Virus record (IMG/VR): IMGVR_UViG_3300042261_001312
Coordinates: 124,001-188,000 of that record
DNA length: 64,000 bases
Reading direction: 5' to 3' (one strand)
Shown here: in pieces, positions 34,189 through 36,965 of the stretch
How the letters are laid out: every line of letters starts with the position of its first letter
Position numbering within the stretch: the stretch's first letter is position 1
Notes under the pieces: generated by a model
The model's input: only the letters and a program-made list of their open reading frames with translations
Database searches by the model: none
What the model was told of the DNA's origin: nothing
Translations under genes and position numbers: made by a program

Positions 34189-35856
34189 ATGGAAAAATTG
34201 GTATTAACAAACAACATGGTGGTTTCAATCAAACAATCTTTGATTGAAGGTCTAACAGTTGCAAGCGGTGCAAAAAGTTCTGCAACCTATTACCACAGTA
34301 AAGACGAACAATTGAAAGCAATTCAGACTCAAATTAGGAATCAGTATTCGCTTTCAAAGGAACTCCCCTTGATTATAGCAAGTCAGAAGGGAGCAACGGG
34401 TCGATTTGTGTCTGAAGTATTGCTCAATGAGTTTAAACAGACACTTAAAGGCGGTGCGTGTAATATTGTTAATCCAATTGATTGGTATGACAATGGATTG
34501 AGTGATAAAGCAGTACTTACTGCATTAAATAATCTTGCAGAAAATGGTCTTCCATATGTTCTTCGTCTTTTCGTTGACTTGAAAGAAGCAAAAGTAAATA
34601 ACGAAAGAACAAGGAAAATTATTCTTGGATTTCTTTGGGGTCAAGCAAACCTTGAATTCTATTCAATGAAATATCGTAACAAGATTGCTGAAGTATTGAA
34701 ACACGTTTATGGTCAGAAGAAAACATCTATTTTGCTTTCAATTGCACGTAAACAACTCTATATGAATAACAACGGTGTTATTGTTACTGCAACTCAAGGT
34801 AGAAATGAAAATTTTAATTTTTTGGGTAGTGAAAAGGAAATTGCAATTGTAAATGATTGTATTTTGAAATATTTCAATGGTGATACTATGAAAGCATTTA
34901 AATTGTTACTTTTCTTGTTCAAAAAAGATGAAAATGTAAGTTACAACGAATTTCCGTTATTGAGCGAATATCAGAGAGCAAGGGTTGATATTACAAATAT
35001 TAAAAATGTTCCTGAAGAAGTATTGCTTGGTTTGATCTCAAGTGTAAAACACCCACAATACCACAGTATGTGGGCAACTAAAACACAAAGGGAAGCAACT
35101 AAGGCATTAATAAGGAAAAATGTTGAAGTAACATCAGTTAACCAACAAGTTCGTCAGACAAAATCAACTGAAAAGTTGGGTGTTGAGAAAACTGTTGATA
35201 TGGGAAAAGCAACTGATTTCATGGCTTTGTACAAAACAGGTTATGAAACTACTTTTACTGCTGAAATTCGTGACGCAATTGACAAACTTGCTGAAAAGAA
35301 AAAAATTCAGGGATTCTTCTACCAAAGTATCGGTATTATTGTTGACGAAAGTGCTTCAATGTCAGGTAATAAAGTAGAATCAAAGAATACTCCAAGAGCA
35401 ATTGCAGACTTTACTTCAAGAGTATTGTCAAAATCTGCAAAAAGTTCAGTTGTTTTTGGAACTGATGGTTTCACTACAGATTTGGCAACTGCATTCATTA
35501 GGTTGATGAAAGTTGAAGGTAATTCGCAATATGATGCGATCTTCATCTTAACTGATGGATATGAAAATGCATATGATGGATTAACAAATGAAGTTATTTC
35601 AATCTGGAAAGCAGAAACAGGTAGAGATATTCCAATGTTTCAGATTTCACCAATCACAAGTGCTGAAATGGGTGCAAATGTAAGAAAATTGGGTGAAGGT
35701 GTTGTCACAATGGCAATAAACAACCCAAGTGCATTGCAACCACAAATCAACGCAAGATTGCTTGAAATTGACACAAAACGTTGGTTGGAAAGTCAAGTAT
35801 TGGCTTTGGAAACAACACCTGTTAAAAGGACAAAAAAAATTAGTATTAACGCATAA
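34189..35856 (+). CDS. Helical-repeat + vWA (MIDAS) protein, TROVE/Ro60-like architecture
   Basis: Long helical N-terminal region; C-terminal IIVDESASMS...TDLATAF...ILTDGYEN vWA MIDAS motifs. The Ro60 relationship is inferred from architecture and context. Confidence 0.6.
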   Translation: MEKLVLTNNMVVSIKQSLIEGLTVASGAKSSATYYHSKDEQLKAIQTQIRNQYSLSKELPLIIASQKGATGRFVSEVLLNEFKQTLKGGACNIVNPIDWYDNGLSDKAVLTALNNLAENGLPYVLRLFVDLKEAKVNNERTRKIILGFLWGQANLEFYSMKYRNKIAEVLKHVYGQKKTSILLSIARKQLYMNNNGVIVTATQGRNENFNFLGSEKEIAIVNDCILKYFNGDTMKAFKLLLFLFKKDENVSYNEFPLLSEYQRARVDITNIKNVPEEVLLGLISSVKHPQYHSMWATKTQREATKALIRKNVEVTSVNQQVRQTKSTEKLGVEKTVDMGKATDFMALYKTGYETTFTAEIRDAIDKLAEKKKIQGFFYQSIGIIVDESASMSGNKVESKNTPRAIADFTSRVLSKSAKSSVVFGTDGFTTDLATAFIRLMKVEGNSQYDAIFILTDGYENAYDGLTNEVISIWKAETGRDIPMFQISPITSAEMGANVRKLGEGVVTMAINNPSALQPQINARLLEIDTKRWLESQVLALETTPVKRTKKISINA

Positions 35857-35867
35857 AAATTTGTACC

Positions 35868-36965
35868 ATGAATACAAGAGAATTTACAGAATTGTTGAAA
35901 GGTTGTCGTCCTGTCAAGGATAGTGATGGTAACATCGTAGTTCAGTCAATTATGAACATGCAAATTGTATGTTTAACGACTGATCCTGAATTTTCATTGG
36001 ATAGTCGCTTTGCGAATCCATTGACTGCTTTAAAGGCAGGTAACTCTTCATATGGTCAGATTAATTTCACTAATACTGAAAATAAGGAAGTTATTGTCCC
36101 AACTCAAATGGCAGTTGTGACTAAGCAAAGTGCTCAGAATCACGGTATGACTAAGGCTGGTTATATATCAGCCAAATCAAATACTGTTTATCGTGATGCT
36201 GGTTGTGTACAGGGTTCACAAACTGGTTACTTTAATGGTACTCAGGAATTCCGTATGCTTCCTGTCACAATGCGTGAAATGGTTTTTGACACTGTTGGTA
36301 AAGGAGAATCATATTCAAGGATTTATCCTGCAGTTGAGAAGTTAGGACGTGATACTCAAGCAAATACAGGTAATTACTTAAATATTTACTTTGAGAAGTA
36401 TGACAAGAAACTTGAGCAGTTTATTGCTCACTTTGAACGTCCAGCCAATCTGATTGGTATTATTGTATTGATTGATGGTGAAATTGTTGCAATAGATAAA
36501 TTCCCTTCATTCACATATGCTGAACAAGTTTGGGATTTAATGATTCGTGACTGCTATGGTTCTCTAGCAATTATTTCTGAATTGAAGAAAAAAACTGCAA
36601 GCAATCTGTTTACAGAAAAATTCAATGAAGTTAGAAAATCGCATCGTGAAAACATTGTTGATTTATTAGAATTGGCTTTGAAAAAAACAAAGCAGGATAT
36701 GACTGCAAATGTTCAAGATAGAATTAAAGAACTTCTTGAATTAAATTTTGATGCAACACTTGATGACGTGGGTCAACCTACTTCAAGGACTGCACCTAAA
36801 AGTTATATGTTGAAAACAGAGGGTTATATTGGTCAGGTAATAACCGAAAATGAATATAACCACATGGTTTCAGTGGTTAAAAGAGAAAGTTTTAACCCAA
36901 ATGCTTTCAGAGAAGTTAGCGAGTTAAGAAAAAAGGCTCGTAGACAAGAAAGATTCGGTTTATAA
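35868..36965 (+). CDS. ARPP-1/DUF6569-like protein
   Basis: AQNHGM...AGCVQGSQTG and LIGIIVLIDGEIVAID.F motifs resemble this family; directly downstream of the vWA gene. Confidence 0.55.
   Translation: MNTREFTELLKGCRPVKDSDGNIVVQSIMNMQIVCLTTDPEFSLDSRFANPLTALKAGNSSYGQINFTNTENKEVIVPTQMAVVTKQSAQNHGMTKAGYISAKSNTVYRDAGCVQGSQTGYFNGTQEFRMLPVTMREMVFDTVGKGESYSRIYPAVEKLGRDTQANTGNYLNIYFEKYDKKLEQFIAHFERPANLIGIIVLIDGEIVAIDKFPSFTYAEQVWDLMIRDCYGSLAIISELKKKTASNLFTEKFNEVRKSHRENIVDLLELALKKTKQDMTANVQDRIKELLELNFDATLDDVGQPTSRTAPKSYMLKTEGYIGQVITENEYNHMVSVVKRESFNPNAFREVSELRKKARRQERFGL

Follow-up and report, generated by a model that had tools for sequence, protein, structure and literature searches.

A divergent Ro60-like gene paired with an ARPP gene downstream of tRNA-like RNA genes in a huge phage genome

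The conserved protein Ro60 acts in RNA quality control and is a major autoantigen in humans. Here, we describe a two-gene unit that encodes a very divergent Ro60-like protein, as judged by predicted structure, and a member of the ARPP-1 family of predicted enzymes. The unit lies in the phage genome of IMG/VR virus record IMGVR_UViG_3300042261_001312, which is 327,676 bp long and complete according to CheckV. The stretch analyzed, called the window below, comprises 64,000 nucleotides (nt), bases 124001-188000 of this record, and coordinates refer to the window unless genome positions are specified. As an original prediction made from the DNA letters had proposed, two open reading frames (ORFs) occupy the plus strand; both are intact, and 11 nt separate them. 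The unit and its boundaries are as follows.

34189-35856, plus strand: ORF A, divergent Ro60/Rsr-like protein of 555 residues (AlphaFold2 model, Foldseek, VIA)
35868-36965, plus strand: ORF B, ARPP-1 family predicted enzyme of 365 residues (Pfam PF20208)
34052-34102, plus strand: intrinsic terminator closing the upstream RNA cluster (hairpin 34052-34098, -24.2 kcal/mol, z -4.2, then U8)
36984-37020, plus strand: intrinsic terminator closing the two-gene unit (hairpin 36984-37014, -17.6 kcal/mol, z -4.3, then U6)

Both terminators were found by folding and were missed by a consensus terminator scan because of its loop and stem limits. With a hairpin and U-run on each side and with tRNA-Asn, tRNA-Met, and structured RNAs upstream, the locus has the expected form of a terminator-bounded pair directly after RNA genes. 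A weak fluoride-riboswitch-like Rfam match on the minus strand (34021-34099) was discarded as the terminator hairpin read in reverse. RtcB, which the original prediction had noted as missing from the window, was found neither there nor anywhere in the 327,676-bp genome.

Predicted structure of ORF A

By an exhaustive phmmer search, ORF A belongs to a family that comprises 325 clusters (50% identity), and its members are almost all full-length proteins of about 500-560 residues. Searches of Pfam, NCBIfam, PHROGs, and PDB sequences with the single sequence or with an 88-sequence profile gave no useful match for ORF A, and a profile search of PDB sequences with the family returned no Ro60 match. 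An AlphaFold2 model built from the 88-sequence family alignment had a predicted local distance difference test (pLDDT) score of 92 and a predicted template-modeling (pTM) score of 0.90, with residues 1-370 predicted to be helical and residues 380-520 predicted to adopt an alpha/beta von Willebrand factor A (vWA) fold. When the PDB was searched with this model using Foldseek, ranks 1-12 were all Ro60/TROVE proteins (human, Xenopus, D. radiodurans Rsr, and Thermus phage phiLo; best E 3.2e-7, ~590 columns), and the probability fell to 0.33 at rank 13. VIA matched 406 residues of the model, between positions 16 and 524, to Xenopus Ro60 (2i91_A) with a Z score of 18.2 and a root-mean-square deviation of 4.3, and gave Z scores of 14.6 for Thermus phage phiLo Ro60 and 12.5 for D. 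radiodurans Rsr. Matches to the vWA domain only ranked below Ro60, the top one being the Rea1 MIDAS domain (Z 11.9). In hhalign comparisons, the family profile matched a canonical Ro60 profile with 84.7% probability (E 6.7e-6) and with the motifs of the MIDAS (metal ion-dependent adhesion site) in register; against single canonical Ro60 sequences, the probability was only 5%.

The MIDAS of ORF A consists of D386-E-S388-A-S390 (DxSxS), a threonine in GFTTD (429-430), and T455-D456-G457. D386, S390, D456, and G457 are invariant in the 88-member family alignment, and S388 and Y458-E459-N460 are nearly invariant. The original prediction that the first gene would be Ro60-like, with a helical region and an intact MIDAS, was borne out, the Ro60 fold by predicted structure only. 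We named ORF A a very divergent Ro60-like protein because its predicted fold and vWA domain match Ro60, while Pfam TROVE fails to match its sequence. Like Ro60/Rsr proteins, members of this family have ~540 residues, are predicted to place a MIDAS-containing vWA domain after a helical ring, and are present in bacteria and phages. Unlike canonical Ro60, including that of phage phiLo (PDB 9l5y), they show no detectable sequence similarity in the ring and are paired with ARPP.

Alternatively, ORF A could be a generic vWA partner of an AAA+ chaperone, of the CoxE, ViaA, or NorD type, rather than a Ro60 relative. A few of the 88 family members have weak Pfam VWA_CoxE matches (best E 4e-4), and the NorD vWA domain gave a VIA Z score of 10.2 for the vWA part alone. 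Set against these matches, full-length similarity was found only to Ro60 (Z 12.5-18.2 compared with at most 11.9 for vWA-only matches), and no MoxR or AAA+ gene is a conserved neighbor of the family. This alternative is therefore very improbable, and the CoxE/ViaA-type relatives that the original prediction had itself raised as the competing identity were outranked by Ro60 proteins in the structural searches.

ORF B, its pairing with ORF A, and a predicted complex

ORF B matched Pfam ARPP-1 (PF20208) over residues 28-252 with a score of 47 bits (cut-off 27; E 2.9e-12). PF20208 was carried by all 120 homologues of ORF B among the matches listed, and one source labels a 74%-identical homologue a 'DUF6569 family protein'. 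The AlphaFold2 model of ORF B (pLDDT 88) had a template-modeling (TM) score of 0.81 to ARPP-1/ARPP-2 clusters of the ESM atlas, where related clusters include ARPP-HIRAN fusions, and it thus agrees with the beta-meander core and inserted barrel that characterize the family. The family match and this fold match confirm the earlier assignment of the second protein to ARPP-1/DUF6569. In a 46-sequence alignment, the invariant residues are Q26, Y62, N69, Q90, H92, C113, Q118, R136, E190, W222, R227, and Y230.

In the published account, ARPP is probably an enzyme, has a conserved Cys and Gln, and belongs to ADP-ribose systems; it also occurs fused to HIRAN, a 3'-end-binding domain (PMC9503650). The invariant Cys and Gln of ORF B fit this description, and ORF B resembles the ARPP proteins of ARG-centered NAD/ADP-ribose systems both in these residues and in predicted fold. 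The partners differ. ARPP in ARG-centered systems is accompanied by ARG, rhodanese-phosphatase, HIRAN, WYL, or deacetylase proteins, whereas the partner of ORF B is a Ro60-like protein, and a Ro60-like/ARPP neighborhood is not listed by Iyer, Burroughs, Aravind and colleagues (2022; PMC9503650).

The pairing of the two genes is obligate. In the phage clade, ARPP is encoded on the same strand directly downstream of the ORF A relative in 60 of 60 loci with room for it, usually after a gap of 11-12 nt. In species-representative genomes, ARPP is directly downstream in about 52 of 58 loci (26 Planctomycetota, 13 Myxococcota, 7 Bacteroidota, and others); all of the loci with room are paired except for two distant relatives, and the stop and start codons of the pair often overlap. 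Complete chromosomes that carry the pair include those of Minicystis rosea, Stieleria, and Novipirellula. By contrast with this family, no ARPP gene adjoins canonical Ro60 genes. When GenBank phages were searched, blastn with the two-gene unit gave no match, and tblastn gave a single match, the unannotated 462-kb uncultured huge phage LR756500, which contains the same pair. Neighbors of homologous pairs numbered 134 in 131 Pfam families, none of which recurs more than three times; among them there is no conserved third protein partner, no RtcB or RtcA, no conserved MoxR/AAA+ gene, and no recurrent ARG or other ADP-ribose enzyme. Unlike the Rsr-RtcB-RtcA RNA repair operon, the unit described here has no linked RtcB or RtcA.

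In three loci filed under cellular metagenome-assembled genomes (MAGs) and labeled Paceibacterota, Pacearchaeota, or 'uncultured archaeon', the pair has phage-like neighbors (L005, JBAZIW010000001.1, 362,763 bp; L028; L038). The L005 contig is identical to another IMG/VR virus record (L097), and all three look like phage contigs binned into cellular MAGs.

Structure prediction for ORF A together with ARPP gave ipSAE interface scores of 0.60, 0.61, and 0.61, compared with 0.00 for the best of three controls. The same mark is reached by 58 of 80 solved complexes and by 2 of 110 mismatched pairs, counts that hold only roughly for this prediction because self-made alignments were supplied. The partner had a pLDDT of 86, and at least 84% of contacts agreed across the three runs. 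In ORF A, the confident interface comprised residues 388-390, 426-441, 456, 458, 460-465, 468-477, and 499, which make up the MIDAS face. In ARPP, it comprised residues 18-19, 24-28, and 187-193, which include the invariant E190, and helices 244-278. In these models, ARPP probably docks on the MIDAS face of ORF A, most likely through the segment that holds Glu190. Acidic residues of the ligand complete the metal site in the MIDAS complexes of integrins and Rea1, and Glu190 may by analogy complete the metal site of the ORF A MIDAS. As modeled, the vWA/MIDAS domain would capture a partner protein, here by a segment with an invariant Glu, much as the Rea1 MIDAS captures the ubiquitin-like domains of Rsa4 or Ytm1 and integrin I domains capture their ligands; the biology of those systems, ribosome assembly for Rea1 and cell adhesion for integrins, is unrelated. 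For Ro60 itself, a 2025 structure paper on a phage protein describes the role of the MIDAS as still unclear (PMC12135203).

tRNA genes and structured RNAs at the locus and in its relatives

In 623 kb of fetched bacterial and phage loci, all of the tRNA genes found by ARAGORN (436/436) were on the strand of the pair. Eighteen loci have at least 10 tRNA genes, nine have at least 20, and M. rosea has 46 in 13.5 kb. A same-strand tRNA gene lies within 1 kb upstream of the pair in 35 of 54 loci. Many homologous loci also carry a circularly permuted tRNA-like element with a T arm, an acceptor-strand hairpin (NCCA loop), a D arm, and a long closing stem. In bacterial loci, comparable elements are situated upstream of the pair. 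A covariance model that we built for the core of T arm, acceptor hairpin, and D arm gave 402 matches, among which only those of at least 50 bits, in 16 loci (16 elements in all), were counted because junctions of tandem tRNA genes mimic the core. Linkage of homologous loci to tRNA genes and tRNA-like RNAs is strong in both phages and bacteria; the original prediction had named a lack of linkage to tRNA-like RNAs among the findings that would count against it.

The genes of the RNA cluster upstream of the pair in the window are listed below.

32519-32591, plus strand: tRNA-Asn (GUU), first gene of the cluster (ARAGORN; Rfam tRNA, 54.3 bits)
32631-32703, plus strand: tRNA-Met (CAU) (ARAGORN; Rfam tRNA, 55.8 bits)
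32745-32882, plus strand: structured tRNA-like RNA, type 1 (weak Rfam tRNA match, 23.7 bits; conservation)
32894-33574, plus strand: GIY-YIG homing endonuclease gene (Pfam GIY-YIG; NCBIfam group I intron endonuclease)
33604-33742, plus strand: Y RNA-like, circularly permuted tRNA-like RNA (minimum-free-energy fold; own covariance model, 63.1 bits)
About 33750-33860, plus strand: third conserved small RNA of unknown kind (nhmmer conservation; RNAalifold)

The permuted RNA (33604-33742) is co-oriented with ORF A and lies 447 nt upstream of it, and 73 of 75 related phage loci have an RNA of this type upstream and on the same strand. Its closing stem, formed by GGGAA/UUCCC plus AAAAGUGUUU/AAAUACUUUU, leaves from the position of the variable loop; the enclosed part consists of a T arm, an acceptor-like hairpin whose loop contains GCCA, a D arm, and an anticodon-like hairpin. 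When 52 distinct sequences were aligned, compensatory changes were seen at 25 of the 35 pairs and 98.2% of alignment cells were paired; none of 500 shuffles reached the observed scores, and slid registers collapsed. In the alignment of the phage clade, the anticodon-like loop is variable and lacks a conserved U33, and therefore we regard this RNA as a mimic and no decoding tRNA. For the same reason, we rejected the possibility that it is a true permuted tRNA gene that matures to a decoding tRNA.

The tRNA-like RNA at 32745-32882 has an 8-bp acceptor stem, an anticodon-like arm, a T arm, and an insertion of ~60 nt in the D region. RNAalifold with 29 sequences gave 32 pairs, 18 with compensatory changes. 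RNAs of this type are kept in the phage clade, often in two or three copies upstream of the Ro60-like gene (three copies in L096; other multi-copy examples include L104 and L114). The insertion forms a helix, AAAUAC/GUGUUU, followed by ACAGUAA, and the same elements occur in the inner closing stem of the permuted RNA. We infer that this shared helix is the best candidate for a protein-binding site. In a scan of the whole genome, a loose regular expression for the motif gave 9 matches compared with 3.6 expected, no better than chance, and only a strict 14-mer was informative. Two segments of the third RNA, CCUAACAUUUGA and GGUUAAGAAUGGUUUU, are invariant, and it also has a 6-bp stem with covariation and a separate hairpin with a U run; RNAalifold assigned it 15 pairs, 9 with compensatory changes.

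Adjacent Ro60/Rsr and tRNA-like YrlA RNA genes are known from more than 250 bacteria and from 22 phages (PMC4201824). Like Ro60/Rsr genes with their Y RNAs (YrlA, Yrn1), ORF A is co-oriented with and just downstream of a tRNA-like RNA with a long closing stem, and like YrlA, this RNA has a T arm, an acceptor-like hairpin, and a D arm in that order. Rfam assigned neither YrlA nor any other named family to the structured RNAs of the window. Upstream of a 27%-identical homologue (L002), there is a sub-threshold Rfam YrlA match of 36.3 bits. The motif GNCGAA(N0-1)G is found near the 5' end of YrlA (PMC4201824); at this site, the window has AACGAAAAG and clade members have ACUGAAAG or ACUUAAAG.

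The properties of these RNAs could also be explained by a decoy particle, in which tRNA mimics are held and stabilized by the ring and titrate anticodon nucleases or tRNA-modifying toxins of the host, with ARPP as an accessory factor or as the inactivator of the captured enzyme. Phage tRNAs do blunt tRNA-targeting defenses, the mimics keep four tRNA arms without being able to decode, given their variable anticodon-like loops without U33, and they are multi-copy in some relatives. A decoy would nevertheless leave unexplained both the invariant, catalytic-looking Cys/His/Gln cluster of ARPP and the presence of the cassette in bacterial chromosomes, and we consider it improbable.

The linkage to tRNA genes bears in turn on a module for ADP-ribose or NAD conflict that does not act on RNA. 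Here, the vWA domain would be a peptide-binding chaperone, ARPP would act on sugars derived from ADP-ribose, a role proposed for ARG-centered systems, and the link to tRNA genes would reflect only co-mobility on tRNA-array islands. ARPP was indeed defined in ARG/rhodanese-phosphatase neighborhoods, often with a vWA gene (PMC9503650). In all 325 clusters of the ORF A family, however, a full Ro60-like ring is joined to the vWA domain, whose profile aligns specifically with the Ro60 vWA. Neither ARG (ADP_ribosyl_GH) nor Macro nor Tpt1 was found in the phage genome, and none recurs among the 134 neighbors, so the link to ADP-ribosylation that the original prediction mentioned for ARPP is without support in this genome. 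The shared strand of all 436 tRNA genes and the dedicated, covarying tRNA-mimic RNAs upstream count further against such a module, which we regard as a long shot.

A less remote alternative, although still rather unlikely, is tRNA-array housekeeping, in which the particle processes, folds, or degrades array transcripts, for example misprocessed polycistronic precursors, and has no role in warfare. RNA quality control is the established task of canonical Ro60 (PMC4201824), bacterial chromosomes commonly carry the cassette in co-oriented arrays that can be as dense as that of M. rosea, and some arrays contain two or three Ro paralogues. Several observations fit housekeeping poorly. The phage genome has 39 tRNA genes, mostly in a single minus-strand cluster at 34-65 kb, and the pair is 90 kb from this cluster and adjoins only two tRNA genes. 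There is no tRNA gene in the fetched stretch for 21 of 60 loci. Finally, tRNA arrays are for the most part elements of a mobile or accessory kind (PMC5966550, PMC4758250), as would suit a conflict setting.

Some Myxococcota arrays have a canonical Ro60 gene ~5 kb upstream of the divergent pair (L024 768-2465; L026 897-2528; L054 2-916), and therefore the divergent family is no substitute for Ro60 and constitutes a separate paralogous line. In other Myxococcota loci, a third and more distant TROVE-like gene is ~2 kb downstream of the pair (L023 9795-11567, L034, L052, L030, and L046); in L023, a separate permuted tRNA-like element lies 110 nt upstream of this third gene.

Ro-family genes within dense, co-oriented tRNA arrays have precedents (PMC6333295; PMC4758250, PMC5966550). 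Of 29 archaeal tRNA clusters, 20 contain annotated TROVE genes (Morgado and Vicente, 2019; PMC6333295), and TROVE proteins have also been described from jumbo phages (PMC7824862). The reported TROVE genes of tRNA clusters are annotated and canonical and occur in archaea and mycobacterial elements. By contrast, the family described here is unannotated, has an ARPP partner and dedicated permuted mimics, and occurs in Planctomycetota, Myxococcota, Bacteroidota, and huge phages. In the literature searched, we found no sequence-invisible Ro60-like family, no strict Ro60-like/ARPP coupling, no predicted docking of ARPP on a MIDAS, and no differently permuted mimic RNAs of this kind.

Proposed mechanism and genomic setting

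We propose, with a probability of roughly 0.6, that the cassette specifies a particle of the Ro60-Y RNA type with a built-in ARPP enzyme that acts on tRNAs or 3' ends. In this model, ORF A would be a HEAT-repeat, TROVE-like toroid capped by its vWA domain, and ARPP, with its invariant Cys-His-Gln cluster, would bind the vWA MIDAS, likely via the Glu190 segment. The RNA partners of ORF A would be the upstream permuted Y-like RNA and the tRNA-like RNA with the inserted helix. By analogy with Ro60, the ring may capture damaged or misfolded tRNAs, or their 3' ends, and pass them on to ARPP for processing or de-modification of the terminal sugar. Such a module could keep the tRNA pool usable during phage infection. 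tRNAs are likely substrates because the cassette sits in or beside same-strand tRNA arrays of phages and bacteria. The 3' ends of tRNAs would be the likeliest site of action because Ro60 rings, which bind Y RNA on their outer surface, admit RNA 3' ends to the central cavity and because ARPP-HIRAN fusions exist.

A number of results weigh against this proposal. First, homology of the ring rests on predicted structure, with a TM score of about 0.5, because no sequence method detects a TROVE ring: Pfam TROVE (PF05731) matched neither ORF A nor any of the 88 family members, no TROVE match was present in the whole phage genome at E<=1, and the hhalign profile-profile match spans only the vWA part. 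Second, ORF B had no fold match in the PDB (best Foldseek E 0.022, probability 0.14), its best VIA Z score over 48,161 chains was only 4.2, and the other parts of the ADP-ribose systems in which ARPP is known were not found in the phage genome. Third, the docking score, which supports binding of ORF A to ARPP, is the structure-prediction model's own confidence. Fourth, with respect to the RNAs, no match to Rfam YrlA (RF02553; gathering threshold 69 bits) was obtained in the window even with the limit relaxed to E<=10, members of the phage clade do not conserve the GNCGAA motif of YrlA, and the arms of the window RNA follow one another in an order (stem, T, acceptor hairpin, D, anticodon-like hairpin, stem) that differs from that of YrlA. 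Fifth, the loci without a nearby tRNA gene count here as they do for housekeeping. Finally, a metatranscriptome matched the locus by two 18-nt pieces only, and the runs that hold the locus are all DNA metagenomes.

The original prediction cast the pair as a counter-defense module acting on RNA. Context gives good support for action on RNA, through the linkage to tRNA and tRNA-like RNA genes, and a counter-defense role in the phage is plausible. The cassette is no phage-specific weapon, because it is common in bacterial chromosomes inside tRNA arrays of Planctomycetota, Myxococcota, and Bacteroidota, and because of this wide distribution, general surveillance or maintenance of tRNA fits equally well.

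More tentatively, and with the odds against it, ARPP might be a natural ligand of the Ro60-family MIDAS and a new enzyme of RNA-end terminal ribose, such that ring, ARPP, and mimics would represent a third class of bacterial and phage system for RNA repair or de-modification. If so, this class would stand beside RtcB/RtcA and Pnkp/Hen1, would be dedicated to tRNA and spread on tRNA-array islands and huge phages, and would suggest that the role of the Ro60 MIDAS is effector recruitment. Our findings point to a large unannotated sister family of Ro60 (the 325 clusters above) with an obligate, catalytic-looking partner at its predicted MIDAS face, and they provide a testable model for effector recruitment by Ro-type rings. 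ARPP gains a candidate class of substrates, tRNA or RNA 3' ends, and tRNA gene arrays, tRNA-mimicking RNAs, and multiple Ro paralogues per island are joined in one setting. Culturable carriers (Stieleria, Rhodopirellula, Novipirellula, and Minicystis rosea) make the cassette tractable. In huge phages, it joins the tRNA sets and the RNA ligase as a candidate module for the protection of tRNAs.

In the phage genome, this RNA ligase gene is of the T4 Rnl1 type and lies outside the window.

Genome 47707-48798 (L144 1120-2211), minus strand: T4 Rnl1-type RNA ligase (PF09511, 66.6 bits)

The gene is inside the main tRNA cluster, between genes for a papain-like protease and an N6/N4 DNA methylase, and the phage therefore invests in tRNA repair; no separate Rnl2-type ligase was found in the phage genome. 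The same cluster includes a tRNA with anticodon CUA, of the amber-suppressor type (genome 33976-34047, minus strand; ARAGORN), which could hint at stop-codon read-through or recoding in the phage.

The DNA runs that contain the locus are lake and freshwater metagenomes. The G+C content is ~31%, and nearly all genes are on the plus strand. The pair is surrounded by phage genes, including those for a UvsX-like recombinase, an exonuclease, a phage DnaB helicase, and the GIY-YIG homing endonuclease, as well as genes for large virion or tail-spike-like proteins. The GIY-YIG gene is inserted between the structured RNA genes and is no part of the module. In one DNA run (X2), its depth was 3-8 compared with 23-37 on its flanks, and therefore the gene seems to be present in just a fraction of the phage population. 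On the 3' side of the downstream terminator, a 380-residue ORF (37092-38234) had no family match, and the region 38247-47267 encodes very large proteins (1381 and 964 residues) with repeated PHROG matches to virion-structural or tail-spike-like proteins.

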